Sequence record: NC_031245.1
Length of the DNA: 64,000 bases
Reading direction: 5' to 3' (one strand)
The notes below the pieces were generated by a model. That model did no database searches. It saw only the letters and a list, made by a program, of their open reading frames with translations, and was not told the origin of the DNA. The number at the start of each line of letters is the position of its first letter. Within the stretch, counting starts at the first letter, position 1. The position numbers were made by a program, and so were the translations under genes. Below, one piece after another: positions 11,284 through 59,105 of this stretch.

Positions 11284-11682
11284 TTATGAACCTATCATAA
11301 TGAATTTTGTGTCGAGTACAATGGTGTCATCTTCAATAATAAAATTAATAACCTCACTACCACCAGTTAGAAATGTGTTACCTAACCAAAGTGAAGGTTC
11401 GATATTTCCTGCAAATAGTTCAGGAACGATAGATATTACTCTTTTAGCTTGATTACGCTCATGCAATTCTCTCAGTTGAGAAATATGACCTATAGTGTCT
11501 GTAGTACATTGGACTGAACGACCTTCCGCATTATCTGTAGCATAAAGTCCGTTACCTGTAACTGCTAAAATTAGGTATTGCATATCGAAATATGCTGACT
11601 CGCGATAAGCTACTCGCACTTTGGTACGAGAGCCTAGTCCATTCTCGCGAGCAAAATTTAATAAGTCACTAAAGGATTTCAT
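11284..11682 (-). CDS. Hypothetical protein
   Basis: GAGAGGTG RBS before ATG (MKSFS...). Confidence 0.65.
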   Translation of the reverse strand: MKSFSDLLNFARENGLGSRTKVRVAYRESAYFDMQYLILAVTGNGLYATDNAEGRSVQCTTDTIGHISQLRELHERNQAKRVISIVPELFAGNIEPSLWLGNTFLTGGSEVINFIIEDDTIVLDTKFIMIGS

Positions 11683-11730
11683 AAAATGCACCTCTCTTAG
11701 TATGTCTGAGTTGGATCTGAGGTATGTGAA

Positions 11731-12501
11731 TTATACTCCTGCTGTTGACATGCCTTCCAATCTGCGTAGTTTCTTAACTAGCTCGACTCTACTTTCTAAG
11801 CTAGCATTTTTAGGCATAGGATAGATTTCTACTTCTAAAGTAGGTCTACCCCAATCCAATGCCTTGGATACAGTGGGCATGTATACGTCGATCTTCCCAT
11901 TATGGATAGCTCCACCTCGGTCAAGTGTAATAGTCCATCCAATACCTGGTATTCTAACTATTGTACCCATTGGGTAATCCTTACCAAGTGCGATAACTCC
12001 TTCGAATACATCGATACCTGAAGACGTCTTACCGTAATCAGGATCACCAGGAGACTTTCCTGTAGATTCAGGTCCAGCAGTATATGCTGTCACTACTTTG
12101 GTCGACTTAATAGGTTGACCTAATGATGCAGGACGTATCTCAGTCTTACCTCTGGATACAGTAACTGAATCGTCAGGTGAATTAGCTTTCACCTGCTTCT
12201 TTAATTTGATTAACTCCTGTCTACGAGATTCAATATTCTTCTTCAAGGAATCAATCTCTTCTTTAGAAGATTTCAGTTGTTTGTTAGAAGTTTTCAGATC
12301 ACCACTTAGTTTCTTGATGACTGACTTCTTTTCTTCAAGTTGAGTGTTGAGCTCAGTCTTCTTTGATTCTAGACTTTTAATTTGCTTATGGTAAGATTCA
12401 ATTTCATCATTTCTCTTCTCAAGCTCAACTAGTGATACACCTAGTCCTCCACCTAGTAAAATGCCTCCAGTTAGTCCTAGGGCTAGTAGCTTTCTATTCA
12501 C
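11731..12501 (-). CDS. Membrane-anchored coiled-coil protein with C-terminal 3D (cell-wall glycosidase-like) domain
   Basis: GAGGAG RBS + GTG; TM segment, coiled coil, then VTAYT..TSSG..GVIALG..PMGTIVRIPG..LDRGGAI..KIDVYM (3D motif). Confidence 0.8.
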   Translation of the reverse strand: MNRKLLALGLTGGILLGGGLGVSLVELEKRNDEIESYHKQIKSLESKKTELNTQLEEKKSVIKKLSGDLKTSNKQLKSSKEEIDSLKKNIESRRQELIKLKKQVKANSPDDSVTVSRGKTEIRPASLGQPIKSTKVVTAYTAGPESTGKSPGDPDYGKTSSGIDVFEGVIALGKDYPMGTIVRIPGIGWTITLDRGGAIHNGKIDVYMPTVSKALDWGRPTLEVEIYPMPKNASLESRVELVKKLRRLEGMSTAGV

Positions 12502-12684
12502 ATCATTCTCCTCTTTCGGTTTGGATTTCGTATGCAATTCTTTCTAGCAATACGATAATACATTTTCAGTAGGATAAAATATCCTATCCTGTGTATACAG
12601 TTTGCTAGCGAGCCATTAATAATAATAGTATTAATTATTAATTAATGTCTCACTATGGAATCACAATCAAATCCAACTCGAAGA

Positions 12685-15375: not shown

Positions 15376-15404
15376 GCTCGATCAAGGCTTACTAAACGTC
15401 TATA
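15376..15404 (+). promoter_or_regulatory. Phage promoter motif GCT-N17-ACGTCTATA
   Basis: Exact motif and spacing. Confidence 0.75.
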
Positions 15405-15839: not shown

Positions 15840-17813
15840 ATGGGTCAAGCAACTCAGAGTTATGATTCGAGTTCATTGAAAGTTTTAACAGATATTGACC
15901 ATATTCGTACAAGACCTGGAATGTATATCGGAGAAACCGATCATCCTAAGCATTTATTTGCTGAAGCTATTGATAATGCGTTGGATGAAACTCAATCAGG
16001 TTATTCTGAAAAGGTAGAAGTTAGGGTAGATACCAAGAAGTGTACGTATGAAATACAGGATTTTGGTCGAGGGATTCCTCACGGTGAGGTAGAAGTGAAA
16101 GACGATCAAGGTAACGTGTTACGTAAAGCTGAGGCAGTTGAAATCCTAGCGACTAAAACTAATTCAGGTGGTAAATTCGATAACGAAGCTTACAAAATCC
16201 GTTCAGGTCTTCATGGTGTAGGATTAACATGTATCAACGCATTATCAGAATTCCTTCAGATTGAAACTCGTCGTGATGGACAGGTAGTTATATTTGAGTC
16301 CGCACAAGGAGTTAAAACTTCTATATCTAAAGATAAAGTCGATAAAAACCTTCATGGGACTACTATTCGATTTAAAGGTGATGCTGAGATATTCGATTCA
16401 ATCGAAATCCCAACGGATTGGATTATAACTCGATGTAAAGTAGCCAATTCTTTAGGATTTACTGTAGAGTTGTACATCGATGGGAAACTTCAAGATTTAG
16501 GTGATAAAGGACTTCTTGAATTAGTCCCACCTAACGGTCAAGGAGTAACCACTTTGACTGATATACCTTTAGAGATTACTCTTGAGGATGGGCAAATGGT
16601 AAAGTCCGTTATCAGATACACTTCTGATACTCGTGAAGCATATCGAGGTTATACCAACCTATTATATAACTCAGGTGGCGGAACACACGTCAGAGAATTG
16701 TCAAGGGTTATTAAAGAAGCTTGGACTCCATATCGAGAAGGAACGATTATTAAATCTAACGACGTACTAATCGGACTTCGTGGTATGGTAGCTGTCTTCA
16801 TTGAAGATCCAAAATTCTCGTCTCAAACTAAAGAGAGACTCGTAGTTAAAAGTAAGCAGATTGAACCACTTTTTGATAAACTTAAGGACGAATTCTCAGA
16901 GTTCTTAAAGTCAAACGAAGATTTACGTAAAGGACTCCTCAAAAGATTTGAGGATTACCGTATGGCTCAAAATAAAATGATGGCTCAGAAGGAAATCCGT
17001 GATCTAGTTAAAGTCAGCGATTCTCTTGATGGTAAAGCTATCAGGCGTAAGTCTGTAGTTGCTGCACTTCGTGAATGTCACTCGACTGACCGAGAAGGTA
17101 CCGAGTTGTACATAGTTGAAGGTGAATCAGCGGGAGGTACAGCTATCTTAGCTCGTGATAAATACACTCAAGCGATTCTTCCACTTACAGGTAAGATTCT
17201 GAATGTAACTAAGAAGTCTATCAAAACTGCACTTAAATCTGAAGAGGTACGTAACATCGTCAATTCAGTAGGTAGTGGAGTTGGAGCTGATTCGGATGCC
17301 AATCGTTCTCGTTACGAAAAAGTAATCGTAATGTGTGATGCCGATCCAGATGGTGCCAACATAGCTGCATTAGTACTTTCAGTCTTCGTTAACATTACAC
17401 CAGATATGGTTAGACAAGGTCGAATCTACTTGGCAGTTCCTCCTCTATATGGATACCGAACTAAGGGTAAGGATAACAAAATTGTTGAGCCTGATGATAA
17501 GAGCGGACAATTCCATCCAGTTTACGATAGAAATGATCTTCCTCCAGAAGTTATCTCTAGTCGTAAGTTTGCTCGATTCAAAGGTTTGGGAGAAATGGAC
17601 GAGGACGAATTGGAAGTAGCTTGTATGTCTGAACCTACTCGCAAGTTGATCCCAATAGAATTTCCTGAAGATATTGAGGACTTCAACGAAGTTCTAAGTA
17701 GTGCAAAACGTAGATTCGTTCTTCTTCAAGGAGAAGGTGTAATCAAATCGTACCGTGATGGATATACTCTTGAGATTGAAGATGAAAGTGAAGGTGAAGA
17801 GGACTGGTCTTAA
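15840..17813 (+). CDS. Type IIA DNA topoisomerase, B subunit (GyrB/ParE-like)
   Basis: RTRPGMYIG, EAIDNALDE, GRGIP, SGLHGVG (GHKL ATPase); VEGESAGG, PLTGKILNV, CDADPDG (Toprim); RFKGLGEM. Confidence 0.95.
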   Translation: MGQATQSYDSSSLKVLTDIDHIRTRPGMYIGETDHPKHLFAEAIDNALDETQSGYSEKVEVRVDTKKCTYEIQDFGRGIPHGEVEVKDDQGNVLRKAEAVEILATKTNSGGKFDNEAYKIRSGLHGVGLTCINALSEFLQIETRRDGQVVIFESAQGVKTSISKDKVDKNLHGTTIRFKGDAEIFDSIEIPTDWIITRCKVANSLGFTVELYIDGKLQDLGDKGLLELVPPNGQGVTTLTDIPLEITLEDGQMVKSVIRYTSDTREAYRGYTNLLYNSGGGTHVRELSRVIKEAWTPYREGTIIKSNDVLIGLRGMVAVFIEDPKFSSQTKERLVVKSKQIEPLFDKLKDEFSEFLKSNEDLRKGLLKRFEDYRMAQNKMMAQKEIRDLVKVSDSLDGKAIRRKSVVAALRECHSTDREGTELYIVEGESAGGTAILARDKYTQAILPLTGKILNVTKKSIKTALKSEEVRNIVNSVGSGVGADSDANRSRYEKVIVMCDADPDGANIAALVLSVFVNITPDMVRQGRIYLAVPPLYGYRTKGKDNKIVEPDDKSGQFHPVYDRNDLPPEVISSRKFARFKGLGEMDEDELEVACMSEPTRKLIPIEFPEDIEDFNEVLSSAKRRFVLLQGEGVIKSYRDGYTLEIEDESEGEEDWS

Positions 17814-26323: not shown

Positions 26324-26986
26324 ATGGGAGAATTCGTTAATCAAATTACTAGTCCGCAAATGCGTATGGATCAGGTGAGTCGCTATTCAGGTACTCGTCA
26401 AGCAGATCCAGAAAGCGTTGCAATCCACGTTACAGACGTATCAATTATGGGATATTCTTTAATCCTACGTCTTAACTCACAATACGGTGAGGATATTAAC
26501 GTTGGGGAGTTCTTAGAGAAAACTATAGTTCACGACATCGACGAAGTACTAACAGGTGATGTTCCTCGGAGTACGAAGTATTACAACACAACAATTCTTA
26601 ATGAACTGAGAGCTGTAGCAGATACTGCTATGAAGCACTTATCAACCAAATGCTTTGCTAGCGATAGAGTTTACACTGTTTGGGATGAATCCAAGCAAGG
26701 TAAAGCAGGTATCATCGTTAAATTGGCTGATATGTTATCAGTTGCTAAGAAGACAATGATCGAAATCGAAATGTTGGGTAACAACTACTTCCTTAAAGTT
26801 GCATATGAAGTACGTCAATATCTAGCTGAGTTAGTAGATTACTTAAATGAAAAGTCTCCATACAATGAAGAAGCAACCCAATATCTTATTACGATTCTTC
26901 AAGATGCAGAGTCCGAAGTAAATCGTCTCTGGACAGATCGTAAGGATATTGCTGAGCGTTACGGATTGCTGAACAATGTCTGGTAA
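26324..26986 (+). CDS. HD-domain 5'-deoxynucleotidase/dNTPase (YfbR-like)
   Basis: RM.QVSRY..ESVAIH, HDIDEVLTGDVP, KLADML. Confidence 0.8.
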   Translation: MGEFVNQITSPQMRMDQVSRYSGTRQADPESVAIHVTDVSIMGYSLILRLNSQYGEDINVGEFLEKTIVHDIDEVLTGDVPRSTKYYNTTILNELRAVADTAMKHLSTKCFASDRVYTVWDESKQGKAGIIVKLADMLSVAKKTMIEIEMLGNNYFLKVAYEVRQYLAELVDYLNEKSPYNEEATQYLITILQDAESEVNRLWTDRKDIAERYGLLNNVW

Positions 26987-45782: not shown

Positions 45783-46520
45783 ATGATTGGTATATACGAT
45801 ACTGTTAAAGAAGATAAGAATCACTATGTGATTTGGTCAGGGGGATGTGATTCAACTTTACTTCTATATGAGGTAGCGTCGAAGTACGGTACTAAAGAGA
45901 AGCCTATTAAAACTATCTCATTTGAGAGCCAATTTCTTCAGTCGAATAAGGTCAAGACTGAAAGATACCGTAGAACTAGATTGCTCATGGAGTTTAAGAA
46001 GAGAGGATTACATATCCAAAATACCACCGTAGTTACTAGTGATAAAGGTGAGAAGTATTATCCTCAACAAAAAGGACTAGCTCAAGCCTTCCTGTGGGTA
46101 ACTCAGTCGTTAATCTACGTAGGTAGTGATAATCTGTATTTCGGTTACATAAAAGGTGATGATTTCTGGCAAAGCTATTCCGACTTCTACTATGCCTGTG
46201 AATATTTAGGTAGGCTATTAGGTCACGAACCTAATTTATGTATACCTTTCCGATATGACAAAAAGTCAACTATTTTGAATGAGTTACATGAACACGATTT
46301 ATATGATCTAACTTGGTACTGCGAATTGCCTGATGAGATAAATCAACCATGCGGTCGTTGTAATCCTTGTAGTACCCACCTAAAAGCTCTATTTGAACTA
46401 GCTCATATCAAAGATAAAGATTGGGCTAAGAAATTACTGGATGATAAGGTGTCGATTCTAGAGAAATTAAGAGCTAAGGATAAGACTATCAATGGTAAGA
46501 AGGTGGTTATCGATATATGA
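45783..46520 (+). CDS. QueC-like (7-cyano-7-deazaguanine synthase family) PP-loop ATPase
   Basis: WSGGCDST PP-loop; TWYC-x8-PCGRCNPC Zn site. Confidence 0.75.
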   Translation: MIGIYDTVKEDKNHYVIWSGGCDSTLLLYEVASKYGTKEKPIKTISFESQFLQSNKVKTERYRRTRLLMEFKKRGLHIQNTTVVTSDKGEKYYPQQKGLAQAFLWVTQSLIYVGSDNLYFGYIKGDDFWQSYSDFYYACEYLGRLLGHEPNLCIPFRYDKKSTILNELHEHDLYDLTWYCELPDEINQPCGRCNPCSTHLKALFELAHIKDKDWAKKLLDDKVSILEKLRAKDKTINGKKVVIDI

Positions 46521-51332: not shown

Positions 51333-51656
51333 TTGTACAATTTCAGTTCTCATCATGATTCAATAGTCAAGTCTGAATCTATTGATTGTAAGACTCACTT
51401 AACTGAAGAGCAAATTCGTACCTTAATAGGTAAGAGAGTTGCTCTACGTAATACTGTACCAATTGCTGACGATTCAGCACCTGATGGAGTTAAAGAAGAA
51501 ACTCTTCAAGCTGAATACTTAGTAGCTGCGTACGACAAAACAGTGATGGTTAATTCCTCAGGTGAAGAAGTTGTTACCTGGACAATTTACGGTGACAATG
51601 GTCAGGGTCAAAAGTTATACAACTACTTGACTCTAGTACTTCTTGATGAGGATTAA
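51333..51656 (+). CDS. Hypothetical protein
   Basis: GGAGG RBS + TTG. Confidence 0.6.
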   Translation: MYNFSSHHDSIVKSESIDCKTHLTEEQIRTLIGKRVALRNTVPIADDSAPDGVKEETLQAEYLVAAYDKTVMVNSSGEEVVTWTIYGDNGQGQKLYNYLTLVLLDED

Positions 51657-51685
51657 GCTCTATTCAGGCTTACTAAACGTTTATA
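51657..51685 (+). promoter_or_regulatory. Phage promoter motif GCT-N17-ACGTTTATA
   Basis: Exact motif and spacing. Confidence 0.75.
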
Positions 51686-51728
51686 ACTGTGAAGTCGTTG
51701 AAATTCAAAATTTTGGGAGGAATATTAA

Positions 51729-52679
51729 ATGAAAAAGCCTAACATCTATCTTGCAAGTCCGTGGTTCTCTAAATACGGATCTTTAGTAGAAGAGACATTA
51801 TACAATTTCTTGAAATCGGATGATCGTATTTCAGTTTACTCACCACGTCGTGATGGAACTAAACTTGAACCTGGTCAATTCCACGATCATGGATTACGTG
51901 CTAAAGTTTTTGCTGACAATGTTAATAATATCGTTAATGCTAACGTAGTCGTTGCTAACGTTGACTCTTTCGAAGGTCATTTAGATACAGGTACGGTTTG
52001 GGAAATCGGGTACGCTATTAACAATAAAGTTCCTGTTATTATCTATACAGGACTTGATAGTGCTAATATTAAAACCGAGGATATCTTAGAAAAGGTTTAC
52101 AAGGTAACCGCTGATGAGTTGTTTGGATTCGATCTATCCGCCGAGTTAGTTACAGTAAGTTCGCTTGATGCACTTAAGGTAAGCTATGAGTCAGTACTTC
52201 AACTTAGTGTTGAGGAAGAGTCGTTATCGCTATTCGTTGTAGGTCCAACTCAAACTCCAGAGAACCTTAAAGTGATTGCTGGGATAAAGGAACTTCTACA
52301 TAGTAAAGGTATTGCTTATGTTGGAGTAGATGAGCTCATGGTTGAATCTGAAAATGAGTTCGATAAGCAATTGAATGATATGTTTAATACGAATCCAGTT
52401 AGTACTATCGAGGAATATGTTAAGGAGTCTGATGGTGTAATCGCAATCATCGATGACCGTAATCCTCTAGTTAGTATGACAATGGGTATGGCATACGGTA
52501 TGAAGAAACCAATGATCTCCTTTACTAATTTTGACTACGGTGTAAACTTAATGTTAATGTTAAGTATTGCTCGTCACGTTAAAGGACTTGGGGAATTAGG
52601 TGAAGCACTAGATGTAGTCGTCAACGAAGGATTTGATGCTTTAGGTGAGAATAACTCTGAAGGAGTTAAAGTTATCTAG
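51729..52679 (+). CDS. Nucleoside 2-deoxyribosyltransferase / dNMP N-glycosidase family, tandem domains
   Basis: IYLASPWFS, YSPRR, VFADNV..I, DTGTVWEIGYA (catalytic Glu); second degenerate copy with MTMGMAYGMKKP lacking the Glu. Confidence 0.82.
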   Translation: MKKPNIYLASPWFSKYGSLVEETLYNFLKSDDRISVYSPRRDGTKLEPGQFHDHGLRAKVFADNVNNIVNANVVVANVDSFEGHLDTGTVWEIGYAINNKVPVIIYTGLDSANIKTEDILEKVYKVTADELFGFDLSAELVTVSSLDALKVSYESVLQLSVEEESLSLFVVGPTQTPENLKVIAGIKELLHSKGIAYVGVDELMVESENEFDKQLNDMFNTNPVSTIEEYVKESDGVIAIIDDRNPLVSMTMGMAYGMKKPMISFTNFDYGVNLMLMLSIARHVKGLGELGEALDVVVNEGFDALGENNSEGVKVI

Positions 52680-52709
52680 ATCAGCTCGATAGTCCAGCTA
52701 TGAATAACC

Positions 52710-52735
52710 GCCTAGGGAACTTCCCTAGGCAATTT
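52710..52735 (+). terminator. Possible terminator
   Basis: GCCTAGGGA/TCCCTAGGC stem with a weak T tract. Confidence 0.45.
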
Positions 52736-52752
52736 AAAATGGAGGTTATCTT

Positions 52753-52941
52753 ATGAGAATTCCTGAACTACACTGGATATTTAATAATAAAGATAAATTG
52801 ACTCAAGAGGAAGTTACTAAACTTGAAACTGAGTATGACTTCTTTAAGCAATACAAAAATGGTGAATTAGATTTACCTGCAGTCAAAATGCTGGATGCAA
52901 TGAATAACTGTATTGCTATCTATAATAAGTACAATAAGTAA
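52753..52941 (+). CDS. Small hypothetical protein
   Basis: GGAGG RBS; 62 aa. Confidence 0.65.
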   Translation: MRIPELHWIFNNKDKLTQEEVTKLETEYDFFKQYKNGELDLPAVKMLDAMNNCIAIYNKYNK

Positions 52942-52944
52942 GTC

Positions 52945-52973
52945 GCTCGATTCAGGTTTTCTAAACGTCTATA
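52945..52973 (+). promoter_or_regulatory. Phage promoter motif GCT-N17-ACGTCTATA
   Basis: Exact motif and spacing. Confidence 0.75.
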
Positions 52974-53024
52974 CTTGTGAAGTTGGTTCCGACACTTTCG
53001 GAATTGCAAAAGGGAGTGAAGTAA

Positions 53025-53669
53025 TTGGGATTCAAAGTTATCTATGGGGCAAATTCTTACATAGCTAAGAACGTACTCCATATGAGCGATAGTGATTACA
53101 TAACTGTAGGTAATCAAGATTGCGACTACACTTATGAGGAGTTCAGGAAACTAAAGAATATTCCTGGGATAAGTCAGGTCTTGTATGCTACTGGTAGACC
53201 TCAACCTCCTAATTCTAAGTTGTCTGAAAATCCTGACCTATTTAGTAAGAATGCTTTTGACTTTTTCAAATTAATGGAGCATCTAGAGGAGTTCTTAATG
53301 AAAGATGCAAGCATAGTCTATCTCTCTTCAGGTCATTCTGTGAGAGCAAGTGATATCAATCCTTATTATGCTGCAAGTAAGGCATCCGTGAATTCTTACG
53401 TCGTATCTATGAGTAAGAAATTCGCTAAGATGAACCTTAAGGATGGAGGTCATCGTAGGATAAATGCAGTTGCTCCTGAAGCAATTGATTCTCCTATGAT
53501 TGATTCCATGTTAGAGTTAGATAATGTACCAAGGGATGTTTATATCAATACACGTCCTAATATGAGACTGCTGTCAATCGAAGAAGTAGTCCATCCTATC
53601 TTGTTCCTGCTTAGTAATAAATCTACAGGAATCAATGGACAAATTTTAATTCTTGGAGGAGTAAAGTAA
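53025..53669 (+). CDS. Short-chain dehydrogenase/reductase (SDR)
   Basis: YGANSYIA nucleotide loop, VYLSSG, YAASK (YxxxK), RINAVAP..IDSPM, FLLS..STGINGQ. Confidence 0.85.
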   Translation: MGFKVIYGANSYIAKNVLHMSDSDYITVGNQDCDYTYEEFRKLKNIPGISQVLYATGRPQPPNSKLSENPDLFSKNAFDFFKLMEHLEEFLMKDASIVYLSSGHSVRASDINPYYAASKASVNSYVVSMSKKFAKMNLKDGGHRRINAVAPEAIDSPMIDSMLELDNVPRDVYINTRPNMRLLSIEEVVHPILFLLSNKSTGINGQILILGGVK

Positions 53670-54910
53670 TGAAAAGAACTGAGTACAAACAACCTAGCGT
53701 AGAGTTAATTAGGGATTTCAATGCTAAGAAAGAAGCATGGATGATTAGTCGTCCTCACTTAGATCATAGCAATATCGATAAGGATATCCTTGGAGTAGAA
53801 GCTATGGACTTACCACTTAATGGATTCGCTCAGTACGTATTCCATGTTAATTCAAGCTTGTTATTCCGTGACTTGATGTTCACGATTCGTCCATTAGTCG
53901 TATGGGCTAAGTCAAATCGTACAACTCCAATCAACAATAAAAATATGTTCTGCTCTGGTGAGTATGAAGGTATTTATGAAAATGAAATTCAAGCAATGTT
54001 CAATGAGGTTTACGAAGAAATCGAGTCAGGAGTTCCTCAGGACTTTGCTAAGAAGAAGTTGCCAATGGCTGCTAATACAGAATTCACTATGAGTATCGAT
54101 GACCGTACTCTAATTGCCTTCATTAAAGTACTTAAGCTTCACAATAAGGACTTATACGAAATCTACGGTAAGAAGTTCCTTGAAGCTATTGGTCGTGATG
54201 AGGACTACGTAGAGAATCGCCACATGGTTGATATCTATCCTAAGATTTCATTGTCCCAACAAGAAATCGAAGCTGTAGGTACAACCCATGAGCACCTTGA
54301 ACAATTCATTGGAGTATACAGTATCAGCAACAACTTAATGGCTCAATTCATTCGTCAGCATTTCTCTACAATCAAGAACGGATTATACAACAAAATTGAG
54401 CATAAGTCTGTTAGTGATAAGGAAGTTGCTCTTCAACGTTGTGATGACGAGACAGTAGTTGCACTTTATGCTGATCGCTCGTCTTTCAGAAAGGTATTAA
54501 GTGTACGTGCTCAATGGTTCGGTCAATGGGATCATAAAGGTAACGATAGCTGGAGTGCAATTCTAGATCCATACGTTAAGGATATGACTCCTGAGGAGTT
54601 CATGGAATTACTCCCTCACGGTAACGCTGAAAGTACTATGTTAGAGGATATGAAACCTCGTATTCGTGCAGGTAAGGTAGAAATAACTGAAGATGGTCGT
54701 ACCTTAACTGGTGAGGTAAATCCTCCTTGTCCGTTACTTCTTGAGAAACCTGATTTAATTGACTTCAGAAAGCAGAAGTACGGATCTAACAGTGAAGTAT
54801 TCAAGGCATGGGAGCGTATACGTGATGCTGGTCTAATCAACGACAATCCAGATAACCCATGGCGTAAGGAATATGAACACAATGTAAAAACTTACGGACT
54901 ACCTGAGTAA
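53669..54910 (+). CDS. Divergent ThyX-like (flavin-dependent thymidylate synthase fold) protein
   Basis: TIR-x7-SNR equals a degenerate RHR-x7-SxR motif; QDFAKKKLPMAANTEFTMSIDDRTL matches ThyX EDAR..LP....T.....N.R.L; second partial copy AQFIRQH; TAATG coupling to the SDR gene. Confidence 0.55.
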   Translation: MKRTEYKQPSVELIRDFNAKKEAWMISRPHLDHSNIDKDILGVEAMDLPLNGFAQYVFHVNSSLLFRDLMFTIRPLVVWAKSNRTTPINNKNMFCSGEYEGIYENEIQAMFNEVYEEIESGVPQDFAKKKLPMAANTEFTMSIDDRTLIAFIKVLKLHNKDLYEIYGKKFLEAIGRDEDYVENRHMVDIYPKISLSQQEIEAVGTTHEHLEQFIGVYSISNNLMAQFIRQHFSTIKNGLYNKIEHKSVSDKEVALQRCDDETVVALYADRSSFRKVLSVRAQWFGQWDHKGNDSWSAILDPYVKDMTPEEFMELLPHGNAESTMLEDMKPRIRAGKVEITEDGRTLTGEVNPPCPLLLEKPDLIDFRKQKYGSNSEVFKAWERIRDAGLINDNPDNPWRKEYEHNVKTYGLPE

Positions 54911-57923: not shown

Positions 57924-58529
57924 ATGAATGACATCAATGGGACAGTACATCCTCGACTGTACGTCTTGGAGGGGTACGAAATGGTAGGTAAGACTGAATT
58001 CATTGATTCTTATCTACAACATGCTTTCAAGTTCCGACCTTCATATGAGGATCTCAATCTAAGAGAATTCATACCTGGTAATTCAAGGAGTCTTCTTGGA
58101 GTTACGGTACTTGACTTCCTCTCTCAGAATCCAGTTCTAATCAATCGGGATATGGTATTCGATAGAGGGTTATTAAGTGGACTGCTCTATGCTAAGTTGT
58201 ATCCTCAAAACGGTACCAACATAGAGCAGGATATTGATAGATTTCTTGGAATGTATCGTATGATGGATACCAAGGTAGTCTATCTATATCACACTGACAA
58301 GGAGTATGCTCGAGATATGTTCGAGTCCAGTAAAAGTCGGACAACTAACGATGCGTCATTTGATCCACCGACTTTCGATAAGTACTGGGACGAGTTCTCT
58401 CGTACGCATGAATGGGCAATAGAGATATTGGAGAAGTACTTTGCGTCATCAGGAGTTTCGTATACTATGATACCAACGATACAAGCTCGTGATGAACAGT
58501 ACGTAAAAACTAAATTAGATCTACTGTAA
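57924..58529 (+). CDS. dNMP kinase (thymidylate kinase-like P-loop)
   Basis: VLEGYEMVGKTEF P-loop; VFDRG. Confidence 0.7.
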   Translation: MNDINGTVHPRLYVLEGYEMVGKTEFIDSYLQHAFKFRPSYEDLNLREFIPGNSRSLLGVTVLDFLSQNPVLINRDMVFDRGLLSGLLYAKLYPQNGTNIEQDIDRFLGMYRMMDTKVVYLYHTDKEYARDMFESSKSRTTNDASFDPPTFDKYWDEFSRTHEWAIEILEKYFASSGVSYTMIPTIQARDEQYVKTKLDLL

Positions 58530-58553: not shown

Positions 58554-59105
58554 TTGACTAAGAGAGTTGCATTTGACATTGATGATACACTAAGTAAAAG
58601 TATGCCTAAGTTTGTTAGCGAACTTAACCTATTAACAGGTAAGAACATTCAGTTCGAAAGTATCCCTGAACTGATCAAGGACTTACCAATTTACTCTAAT
58701 CCATTGTTTTCATTATACAGTGAAGTTGGGGATGAGGTACTCTCATCCCATTTCAGAGAAAATGAAGCATCCTGGATCCTCAATATGGAAGTAATGAAGG
58801 ACGGACTAGCTAAGGCTAAGGAACATGCTGAGCTTGGTCATGAAATCTTCTATATTACTGCTAGACCTATTGCGGTAAAATTTGAGACAGTTCAGTGGTT
58901 AATGCTTCATGGATTTCCTGTCGGAGAAGTATTTCATAACTGGGACAAACTGAAGATGGCTAGAAATTATAACATTGACATATTTTACGAGGACAATCTC
59001 CACAATGCTAAGCTGCTAGCTGATGCAGGTATCGAGACTTACTTGATTGACGGAGTACATAATCGTCAGATTGATCTCGGAATTGAACGACTCTATTGGA
59101 AATAA
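58554..59105 (+). CDS. HAD-family 5'(3')-deoxyribonucleotidase (NT5C-like)
   Basis: FDIDDTL, YITAR, FYEDNLHN. Confidence 0.82.
   Translation: MTKRVAFDIDDTLSKSMPKFVSELNLLTGKNIQFESIPELIKDLPIYSNPLFSLYSEVGDEVLSSHFRENEASWILNMEVMKDGLAKAKEHAELGHEIFYITARPIAVKFETVQWLMLHGFPVGEVFHNWDKLKMARNYNIDIFYEDNLHNAKLLADAGIETYLIDGVHNRQIDLGIERLYWK

Follow-up and report, generated by a model that had tools for sequence, protein, structure and literature searches.

A phage gene module linking a divergent ThyX-fold protein to nucleoside 2-deoxyribosyltransferases, and its possible part in the hypermodified thymine of Bacillus phage SP-15

The gp127-gp130 locus of SP-15

The DNA considered here (the window) is a 64,000-nucleotide stretch of sequence record NC_031245.1; a 3.4-kb query from it is 100% identical to Bacillus phage SP-15 (KT624200.1), of which it makes up bases 62001-126000, window base 51600 being record base 113600. 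Our subject is a set of four open reading frames (ORFs) at 51729-54910, SP15_127 to SP15_130, which GenBank labels respectively as a nucleoside 2-deoxyribosyltransferase (NDT), a hypothetical protein, an acyl carrier protein reductase and a thymidylate synthetase, and above all the last of these, gp130, a divergent protein with the fold of ThyX. About half of the thymine in SP-15 DNA is replaced by 5-(4',5'-dihydroxypentyl)uracil (DHPU), which is decorated with glucose and phosphoglucuronate. The structure of DHPU was reportedly worked out in 1972-73; to judge from its titles, the work of Walker and Mandel in 1978 is said to place DHPU as a nucleoside triphosphate in infected cells, pointing to synthesis at the nucleotide level, and to report the entry of a ribose label into it. 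An earlier note, written from the letters of the window, had suggested a DHPU-type base as in SP-15, and the window has turned out to be SP-15 itself. The features of the locus are as follows.

51663..51695, + strand: promoter-like element, copy 1, before the NDT unit (33-nt pattern)
51729..52679, + strand: gp127, tandem NDT-family protein, 316 aa (PF05014, phrog_7995, residue alignments)
52707..52730, + strand: perfect inverted repeat CCTAGGGAA-C-TTCCCTAGG in the gp127/gp128 gap (sequence inspection)
52753..52941, + strand: gp128, 62-aa ORF (ORF list)
52951..52983, + strand: promoter-like element, copy 2, before the SDR/ThyX-like unit (33-nt pattern)
53025..53669, + strand: gp129, short classical-type short-chain dehydrogenase/reductase (SDR), 214 aa (PF13561, phrog_3142, alignment)
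53669..54910, + strand: gp130, divergent ThyX-fold protein, 413 aa, with a putative degenerate second ThyX-like repeat (fold search, family alignment)

The assignment of gp127 to the NDT family follows from its profile matches (74 bits to Pfam PF05014, cut-off 28.8; 2.9e-146 to phrog_7995) and from its catalytic residues, and transferase activity is predicted for it; its best match in the PDB is 6evs, an N-deoxyribosyltransferase. Copy 1 (residues 1-107) keeps Y7, D86 and E92, in the segment 'DTGTVWEIGYA'. In copy 2 (residues 169-295) the Tyr is lost ('FVVGP') and 'SMTMG' stands at the Glu position, and the Asn-x-Met segment is retained as 'GVNLML' (N273, M275); the combination of an intact catalytic Glu and a tandem inactive copy is thus just as it had previously been described. 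These five residues of gp127 are invariant in six module-linked NDTs, the catalytic set of such enzymes being Y7/D92/E98/N123 in L. leichmannii numbering, with the Glu as nucleophile. Listeria phage LIS04 has a syntenic copy of gp127 that is 49.5% identical. The earlier note had compared the enzyme with the nucleotide-cleaving DNPH1 and MilB, but in sequence the module NDTs resemble nucleoside transferases far more: a profile made from seven module-linked NDT domains finds 6evs at 1e-23, as against 8e-4 for DNPH1 (4fyh) and 1.2e-3 for the MilB-type CMP N-glycosidase 4jen.

The SDR gp129 scores 64 bits against PF13561 (cut-off 27) and also matches phrog_3142. Its tetrad N76/S102/Y115/K119 is complete and invariant in the alignment, its Gly motif is degenerate (YGANSYIA, versus TGxxxGxG), and about 35 residues are missing after this motif, a deletion common to the 57% identical orthologue in the metagenomic locus L007. 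The closest solved structures are of the glucose/ribitol dehydrogenase and FabG types. At the junction GGAGGAGTAAAGTAATG the gp129 stop overlaps the gp130 start (TAATG) with a GGAGGAG site ahead of it, so that the coupling of the two genes that had been proposed can be read directly in the sequence; in L007 the orthologous SDR likewise lies directly upstream of the gp130-like gene and overlaps it, by ATGA.

The division into two promoter-driven units also finds a counterpart in the sequence. The 33-nt element TTCAGGnTTnCTAAACGTnTATAnnTGTGAAGT, predicted to be promoter-like, has exactly two copies in the 64 kb (at 51663 and 52951; 0 expected by chance), one before each unit, and its core belongs to a motif class, nTAAACGTnTATAcTTGTGAAG, with 10 copies (window 13348-52982) as compared with 0.06 expected. 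Most copies of nTAAACGTnTATAcTTGTGAAG are on the + strand and closely precede genes of replication and nucleotide metabolism (for example at 15392, 18194, 36936, 40306 and 50785); they probably represent a phage-specific promoter class. The inverted repeat at 52707..52730 may act as a terminator or attenuator between the two units; a terminator scan did not report it, the loop being short and a T-run absent. Finally, gp128 has no Pfam or PHROG match and no tblastn match in the related loci.

That gp130 has a ThyX fold, as had been suggested, is borne out by its AlphaFold model (pLDDT 91.9, pTM 0.89), for which the top Foldseek matches are all ThyX (probability 1.0, target TM-score ~0.6), and by an hhalign comparison of a 29-member gp130 family alignment with T. 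maritima ThyX (90% probability). This comparison sets T72-I73-R74 of gp130 on R78-H79-R80 of ThyX, so that the signature RHR-x7-SxR does become TIR-x7-SNR, exactly as had been claimed. It also pairs S82/R84/K128 with ThyX S88/R90/R147, which we take to form the dUMP phosphate site, and D125 with E144. The ThyX loop H53-E58 is deleted in gp130, N169 is replaced by Ala, and R174 has no conserved partner in repeat 1. Presumably R78, H79, N169 and this loop make the FAD and folate contacts, the loop stacking on both folate and flavin. Against Pfam PF02511 gp130 scores 26.2, marginally above the cut-off of 24.8, and against the ThyX equivalog model TIGR02170 it scores 26.7, well below the cut-off of 87.9. 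Since it lacks RHR and scores below the equivalog threshold, gp130 is not classed here as a ThyX.

The suggestion of a second, partial domain fares less evenly. Residues 196-413, when folded alone, retrieve ThyX first but weakly (E = 0.027, probability 0.99, TM 0.30-0.35), while sequence comparison of this C-terminal half with ThyX, and with the N-terminal half of gp130, is not significant; from the models, a second and degenerate ThyX-like repeat is plausible. Most gp130 homologues have a Cys cluster in this half, LPCKGxCxxC (often CX3CX2C) plus NPPCP and often SVRSCWF, at alignment columns ~385-430 (gp130 residues ~316-356, window 54614-54736). SP-15 itself has H, A and S at three of the Cys positions and keeps only C354. 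The cluster resembles a metal or Fe-S site with which some lineages can dispense; we rejected the idea of an essential Fe-S site (CX3CX2C plus PPCP), since the cluster is variable and lost in SP-15.

SP-15 also encodes a presumably genuine ThyX outside the window, gp9 (L006:5512-6348), which is itself atypical. In gp9 KYR replaces RHR, an insert of about 50 residues precedes the S-R-R segment, and there is no Arg at the 'NARSL' position. An hhalign comparison of the gp130 family with gp9 gave only 1% probability, and T. maritima ThyX was used instead.

The gp130 family and its linkage to NDT genes

A word-indexed search with gp130 found 45 homologues (28-61% identity), all of them metagenomic, and a profile search of 1.84 billion representative proteins retrieved 350 clusters at E <= 1e-3, 300 of these at <= 1e-10 and 142 at <= 1e-30. 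By these searches gp130 appears to found a sizeable family of its own, which stays apart from the very large family of canonical ThyX. RHR is kept in none of its 172 members with at least 300 residues, among 182 sequences retrieved, being replaced by T/S-hydrophobic-R or lost entirely, and a subfamily of fused proteins described below lacks even R74. The positions invariant in the 29-sequence alignment are W24, R67, D68, R74, P75, W79, R84, R146, Q226, R229, R280, D288, W295, R367, S375 and W381. The annotated phages with a homologue are Carin-5 (43%), Streptococcus phage GXN1 (41%), Xanthomonas phage phiXF1, the Vibrio phages Va2, 1.031.O and 150E35-1, and the Yersinia phages YerA41 and GN1. 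With search patterns that were narrow in both cases, a closer-alignment search of IMG/VR added one new gp130-like locus and a search of 185,579 reference genomes added none. By these searches the family looks confined to phages and metagenomes.

Its distribution follows that of phages with hypermodified DNA. In three phages, SP-15, Carin-5 and YerA41, chemistry or mass spectrometry has revealed thymidine bearing a pentyl-type linker together with phosphate and sugars (PMC12686479, PMC13697223), and the family is present in all three. No homologue was matched, at the thresholds used, in RP13, phiLo, TM30 or EP_H11; for RP13 and EP_H11 the literature infers a route through 5-hydroxymethyldeoxyuridine (5hmdU) and aGPT-Pplase (PMC12686479, PMC13697223), the latter protein being placed in RP13, EP_H11 and IME92 (PMC13697223). 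Nothing on DNA modification of phiXF1, GXN1, GN1 or 150E35-1 was found in the literature searched. Of the three genes whose co-occurrence the earlier note had proposed to check, the SDR is far from universal and has a clear orthologue only in L007.

The neighbours of gp130-like genes were compared in nine phage genomes and about 13 metagenomic loci (numbered with an L), out of the roughly 350 clusters. With gp127 as query only LIS04 was matched among phages; with a single-domain NDT taken from beside a metagenomic gp130 homologue, 34 of 50,697 phage records were matched, and these include all ten records (nine phages) that have a gp130 homologue. In eight of the nine the two genes are at most 3 kb apart. 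The probability of such an overlap by chance is ~4e-33 if the records are treated as independent and ~6e-20 if they are reduced to six lineages. The gp130-like gene of Va2, 1.031.O, 150E35-1 and phiXF1 has the NDT as its immediate neighbour, 130-150 bp downstream. GXN1 shows the arrangement NDT-HD-gp130-like. YerA41 and GN1 have 2.3-2.5 kb between the gp130-like gene and a downstream NDT, SP-15 has its NDT 1 kb upstream, and in Carin-5 the two genes are 10.8 kb apart. The metagenomic loci give a similar picture: in L010 and L018 the two genes overlap; L013 and L007 have the NDT one gene away, that of L007 being fused to MazG; and in L014 and L016 the distance is 4-6 kb.

The two functions also occur in a single polypeptide. 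Six representative sequences, each about 800 aa long, naturally combine a gp130-like part, a partial segment resembling ApbE and an NDT domain. Aligned with the family, the gp130-like part gives E = 1.6e-31, and the NDT domains keep the Tyr, Asp, Glu and Asn-x-Met residues; for the ApbE-like middle segment (a flavin transferase family) BLAST detected no counterpart in SP-15 or in the unfused loci. After the fusion in L020 come a YfbR-like HD protein and an epimerase/dehydratase-type extended SDR, and glycosyltransferases are encoded upstream. As far as sequence can tell, what this analysis chiefly adds is the linkage between gp130-like proteins and NDTs, which rests on 9/9 co-occurrence, on adjacency and on natural fusions.

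Some observations on individual loci may be added. The fusions are exemplified by the ~800-aa proteins P0100, P0110, P0118 and P0133 and by the loci L019, L020 and L021. The 'mannosyltransferase' of YerA41 (YerA41_086, L004:11380-11916) and that of GN1 are NDT-family proteins with the catalytic Tyr, Asp and Glu kept. In LIS04, which is closely related to SP-15, the tandem NDT occupies the corresponding position, no SDR is present, and another kind of ThyX-like gene comes next; this gene, LIS04_124 (L024:8514-9629), encodes a 371-aa ThyX-like protein in the place of gp130, with VRSK...ASY...TSR and a Pfam Thy1 score of 47 bits. In Enterococcus phages (e.g. VPE25 and vipetofem) the NDT adjoins a deoxynucleoside kinase gene.

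Apart from the NDT, a few other gene types recur around gp130 homologues, and SP-15 has possible counterparts of several of them elsewhere in the window.

26324..26986, + strand: YfbR-like HD 5'-deoxynucleotidase, candidate deoxynucleoside supplier to the NDT (PF12917, 1.1e-23)
57924..58529, + strand: gp134, P-loop protein, weak candidate for the kinase of the modified dNMP (Walker A GYEMVGKT)
58554..59105, + strand: gp135, HAD-superfamily phosphatase (NT5C-like), possible accessory (Pfam HAD-type matches)

L007, L013, L018, L020 and GXN1 each have a YfbR-like HD gene adjacent or close to the gp130-like gene. Homologues of the SP-15 HD gene itself lie beside the gp130-like gene in L007 and elsewhere on the contig in L012 and L013. 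MazG, fused to the NDT in L007, is encoded nearby in L009 and L014. P-loop genes of the AAA_18/AAA_28-like kind flank the gp130-like gene in Va2, L009 and L016, and an AAA_28-like gene lies ~6 kb downstream of it in L012. As to gp134, it has a weak homologue in L013, matches no family or solved structure, and cannot be assigned to any kinase family. The gp135 protein is homologous to that of an NT5C gene that overlaps the gp130-like gene of L012. Deoxynucleoside kinases are encoded by both SP-15 and YerA41. The roles that the earlier note gave to the kinase and to the genes said to police the nucleotide pool would be conjecture.

A reductase gene is usually present as well, its type varying from locus to locus without orthology: L007 has a gp129-type SDR and L020 the extended SDR, L009 and L014 have iron-containing alcohol dehydrogenases, Carin-5 has an FNR-like protein next to its NDT, and L016 a radical SAM/SPASM protein. 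YerA41 and Va2 have more distant relatives of gp129 elsewhere in their genomes. On this sequence comparison the SDR would be an accessory, and not a core member, of the module. The flavoprotein-like neighbours of Carin-5 and L012 proved not to be homologous to each other.

A possible route to DHPU and its competitors

Considering the linkage, the folds and the phyletic pattern together, we propose that gp127, gp129 and gp130 are the SP-15 version of a conserved phage module that builds the five-carbon side chain of DHPU from 2-deoxyribose at the nucleotide level, a reading to which we would give one chance in two (a probability of about 0.5). Observation supplies its basis (folds, catalytic residues, gene linkage, fusions and distribution), and every chemical step set out below is our inference. 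The general idea that an NDT and a ThyX-like protein act on a pentose-derived chain at C5 had already been put forward; its genetic half has been strengthened considerably by the co-occurrence, adjacency and fusions, and its chemical half would still be conjecture drawn from sequence.

NDTs make the C1' of deoxyribose electrophilic, ThyX enzymes make the C5 of dUMP nucleophilic without an enzyme thiol, and YfbR-family enzymes convert dNMP to deoxynucleoside. The scheme would combine these capacities in five steps. First, MazG (in the relatives) would convert dNTP to dNMP, and the YfbR-like HD enzyme (26324 in SP-15) dNMP to deoxynucleoside. Second, the NDT would cleave the N-glycosidic bond by means of Glu92, yielding either a C1'-activated deoxyribosyl-enzyme or free 2-deoxyribose. 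Third, gp130, holding dUMP through the putative phosphate site Ser82/Arg84/Lys128 and rendering its C5 nucleophilic, would bond this carbon to C1' of the sugar. Fourth, the C-linked sugar would be ring-opened, its 1'- and 3'-oxygens would be lost by dehydration and two hydride equivalents taken up, from gp129 with NAD(P)H and possibly also from flavin, the 4' and 5' hydroxyls staying in place. Fifth, a kinase (possibly gp134) and the host NDP kinase would give DHP-dUTP, to be incorporated by the DNA polymerase, which is fused to a uracil-DNA glycosylase (UDG); the gp146-155 cluster would then add glucose and phosphoglucuronate. The ThyX chemistry on which the third step is modelled is summarised in PMC8989533.

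Several considerations are agreeable to this scheme. 2-Deoxyribose fits the DHPU chain: it has five carbons, of which C2 is a CH2 and C4 and C5 bear oxygens. Since ribose is the source of deoxyribose, the title reporting a ribose label fits too. Retention of the 3'-OH would agree with the additional 16 Da of the YerA41 linker (PMC13697223). We also considered whether this extra mass could be explained by the lack of an SDR, and rejected the idea since YerA41 has gp129-like SDRs.

As for the donor, deoxynucleosides appear the natural substrates of the NDT because the profile is closest to true NDTs and because YfbR-like HD and MazG genes recur at these loci. An unphosphorylated deoxyribosyl unit derived from a deoxynucleoside is accordingly more likely than a pentose phosphate, and the evidence points to the classical covalent deoxyribosyl-Glu intermediate in preference to the release of deoxyribose 5-phosphate. 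The MazG::NDT fusion of L007 leaves a donor derived from a nucleotide plausible, and DNPH1-like release of deoxyribose 5-phosphate is conceivable as a variant of the same idea that would also explain the phosphate of the side chain. A more specific version of our proposal is a two-component C-alkylating system, in which a covalent 2-deoxyribosyl-glutamate is captured by the C5 of dUMP within a flavin-poor ThyX scaffold and the resulting C-deoxyribosyl-dUMP is reductively opened to tri- or dihydroxypentyl-dUMP. This we advance tentatively, as a speculation with the balance of probability somewhat against it; if true, it would constitute a new reaction class for both superfamilies and give a common origin to the linkers of SP-15, Carin-5, YerA41 and at least 300 further uncultured phage lineages.

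Comparison with known systems brings out what is familiar and what is novel in the module. With ThyX (PF02511; T. maritima TM0449) gp130 shares the fold and, at the dUMP phosphate site, the Ser/Arg pair and a basic residue; its substrate is probably dUMP, whose C5 would be activated without a cysteine nucleophile. Unlike ThyX, it is twice as long, with the putative degenerate second repeat and a C-terminal extension, lacks both RHR and the H53-E58 loop, is linked to an NDT, and would take its carbon from a pentose instead of methylene-tetrahydrofolate. The dUMP/dCMP hydroxymethylases of SPO1, PhiW-14 and T4 offer a parallel in that a synthase-type enzyme modifies C5 of a pyrimidine dNMP before replication, with kinase steps, incorporation and further decoration to follow (PMC8989533, PMC5889632); these enzymes, however, have the ThyA fold and gp130 that of ThyX, and their one-carbon unit is extended later through a heteroatom, whereas the SP-15 chain consists of five carbons throughout. 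In nucleoside-antibiotic biosynthesis (MilA/MilB, BlsM) a thymidylate synthase-type enzyme is also genetically paired with an NDT-superfamily enzyme around a C5-modified pyrimidine. There the CMP hydroxymethylase MilA is of the ThyA fold and its partner MilB hydrolyses nucleotides to free the base, whereas the phage product must keep its N-glycosidic bond; moreover, the phage NDTs match MilB at E = 1e-3 as against 1e-23 for true NDTs. A chemical precedent for a reversible bond between C5 of uracil and C1 of a pentose is provided by the pseudouridine-5'-phosphate glycosidase YeiN and by C-nucleoside synthases; YeiN differs in its unrelated fold and mechanism (a Lys Schiff base), in accepting free uracil and not dUMP, and in that the sugar is not reduced afterwards. 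Finally, the NDT and deoxynucleoside kinase salvage pair of Enterococcus and Lactobacillus phages involves the same NDT family with the same catalytic residues, but those phages have no gp130-like gene, and in the gp130 group the partners are ThyX-like and often HD proteins.

Various points weigh against our proposal. To our knowledge, C-C bond formation by an NDT/ThyX-like pair is without precedent. The mapping of active-site residues depends on residue roles from the ThyX literature and on a T. maritima sequence that agrees with a PDB alignment over the part checked, residues 121-185. The flavin-contacting Arg residues R80 and R165 of ThyX are retained in gp130 as R74 and R146, which, together with the ApbE-like fusions, would keep one-carbon chemistry of the flavin and folate type conceivable for gp130. 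No NDT was found within the DNA examined of L009, L011, L012 and L015. The reductive half of the scheme rests on neighbours that are not orthologous: a gp129-type SDR is absent near many gp130 homologues, and the 'FabG-like' gene close to the gp130 homologue of Carin-5, tried as a relative of gp129, was rejected (BLASTP E = 23). Lastly, the NDT could act after gp130 and not before it.

This last order of events underlies one alternative, which we consider unlikely. Here gp130 would build the chain on free uracil, or on a nucleotide that then loses its sugar, and the NDT would put a 2-deoxyribosyl group on N1, with kinases to follow; in a variant, the NDT would hydrolyse or exchange unwanted nucleotides, as MilB does after MilA. 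The module NDTs are indeed most like base-exchanging transferases, MazG, a YfbR-like HD protein and an NDT make a plausible chain for supplying a deoxyribosyl donor, and SP-15 and YerA41 have the deoxynucleoside kinases that such a route would employ. The salvage pair of NDT and kinase in the Enterococcus phages and the pairing of a thymidylate synthase-like enzyme with a downstream NDT-like one (MilA/MilB) in mildiomycin biosynthesis are similarly in its favor, and adjacency and fusion are equally compatible with either order of steps. However, gp130 keeps the residues of the ThyX dUMP phosphate site, and if dUMP is the substrate re-glycosylation would be needless; the partners of the NDT in gp130-bearing phages are gp130-like and HD genes, not a deoxynucleoside kinase; and the source of the activated five-carbon unit would still have to be explained.

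A further alternative has gp130 act as a dUMP hydroxymethylase that makes 5-hydroxymethyl-dUMP (5hmdUMP) from methylene-tetrahydrofolate, the other four carbons being added later and the NDT and HD proteins merely managing nucleotide pools. It is the published view: Kropinski et al. (2018) put forward, as a hypothesis, gp9 as the true thymidylate synthase and gp130 as the hydroxymethyl-dUMP synthase, and they counted gp129 among genes presumed to take part, stated that gp130 'has no homologs' and left gp127 unmentioned (PMC5977210). The Carin-5 and YerA41 papers still assume the 5hmdUMP route (PMC12686479, PMC13697223), the former listing the gp130-like proteins at the thymidylate-synthase step towards 5hmdUMP (PMC12686479), and all other known thymidine hypermodifications begin at 5hmdU (PMC8989533). 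The ThyX fold, the Arg residues kept as R74 and R146 at the flavin-contact positions, and the ApbE-like flavin-transferase domain of the fusions would all suit such an enzyme. On the other hand, R78 and H79 are replaced, the H53-E58 loop is deleted and, in the fused subfamily, R74 is lost, and the invariable linkage or fusion with an NDT is left unexplained. The chain of DHPU is all carbon and a ribose label, by the title of the 1978 work, enters it; and we know of no enzyme, demonstrated or proposed, for the four-carbon extension of 5hmdU. Furthermore, gp130 homologues were not found in the SP-15-like phages RP13 and EP_H11, which are reported to carry aGPT-Pplase. On balance we judge this alternative improbable too, about as much as the preceding one.

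That gp130 is simply a second divergent synthase making dTMP, surrounded by unrelated nucleotide salvage genes, is very improbable: for it speak the GenBank label 'thymidylate synthetase' and the marginal Pfam Thy1 match above the gathering score, and against it the ThyX gp9 that SP-15 already has, the score of 26.7 where the equivalog model demands 87.9, the family-wide absence of RHR, a family profile that retrieves only 350 clusters from 1.84 billion proteins without merging with canonical ThyX, and a distribution that tracks hypermodified-DNA phages and NDTs.

Earlier publications cover DHPU as such, these genes, and a part played by gp130 and gp129. In the literature searched we found no description of the pairing of NDT and ThyX-like proteins, of their fusions or of the carbon donor proposed here, and no enzyme assigned to the five-carbon chain of DHPU; there is a substantial chance that the chemistry of the module is new. 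The linkage turns the question of the DHPU chain into a reconstitution with three or four proteins and defined predicted masses. If our deoxyribose model is right, two well-studied enzyme superfamilies would have a new C-C bond-forming reaction, and it would be explained where the bulky linkers come from, which stop commercial polymerases and restriction enzymes. A gp130-like gene together with an NDT would then be a sequence marker predicting such hypermodified DNA in metagenomes, and the enzymes could serve for making C5-alkylated nucleotides.

Minor observations on related loci

A LuxS homologue is encoded immediately upstream of the gp130-like gene in two metagenomic loci (L009:4006-4497 and L014:9501-9947). 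That of L009 overlaps the start of the gp130-like gene and has its catalytic and metal residues intact (HTIEH, GCLTG and SCG are kept), and the L014 copy is degenerate. The product of LuxS is 4,5-dihydroxy-2,3-pentanedione, another five-carbon 4,5-diol. In L015 an AdoHcy hydrolase gene lies 2.4 kb upstream. Va2 (L005) encodes a thiamine-pyrophosphate enzyme and a phosphoenolpyruvate mutase (11407-12507 and 16208-17113) a few kb downstream of its gp130-like/NDT pair; these genes might be the start of a phosphonate pathway, and the DNA decoration of this phage might include phosphonate.

In the SP-15 window, a lone QueC-like gene of the 7-cyano-7-deazaguanine synthase family (PF06508, 27.7 bits) is found at 45783-46520, just after the DNA polymerase gene, other deazaguanine genes not having been searched for. 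No strict Nudix box was seen among the + strand window ORFs of at least 60 aa. In YerA41 (L022:5749-9309) the gp129-like SDR is one of two tandem SDRs, clustered beside the DNA polymerase gene with a deoxynucleoside kinase, KpsC-like transferases, a carbohydrate esterase, an IspD/TarI-like cytidylyltransferase and a glycerophosphodiesterase. This cluster may carry out teichoic-acid-like chemistry and build the phosphate-sugar part of the modification. Finally, the gp130-like/NDT/HD module of L018 (4920-5702 and 6589-9441), which has a sulfotransferase gene nearby, is accompanied by a Pol III alpha-type polymerase instead of the UDG-fused PolA, and the module is therefore not tied to an SP-15-like polymerase.

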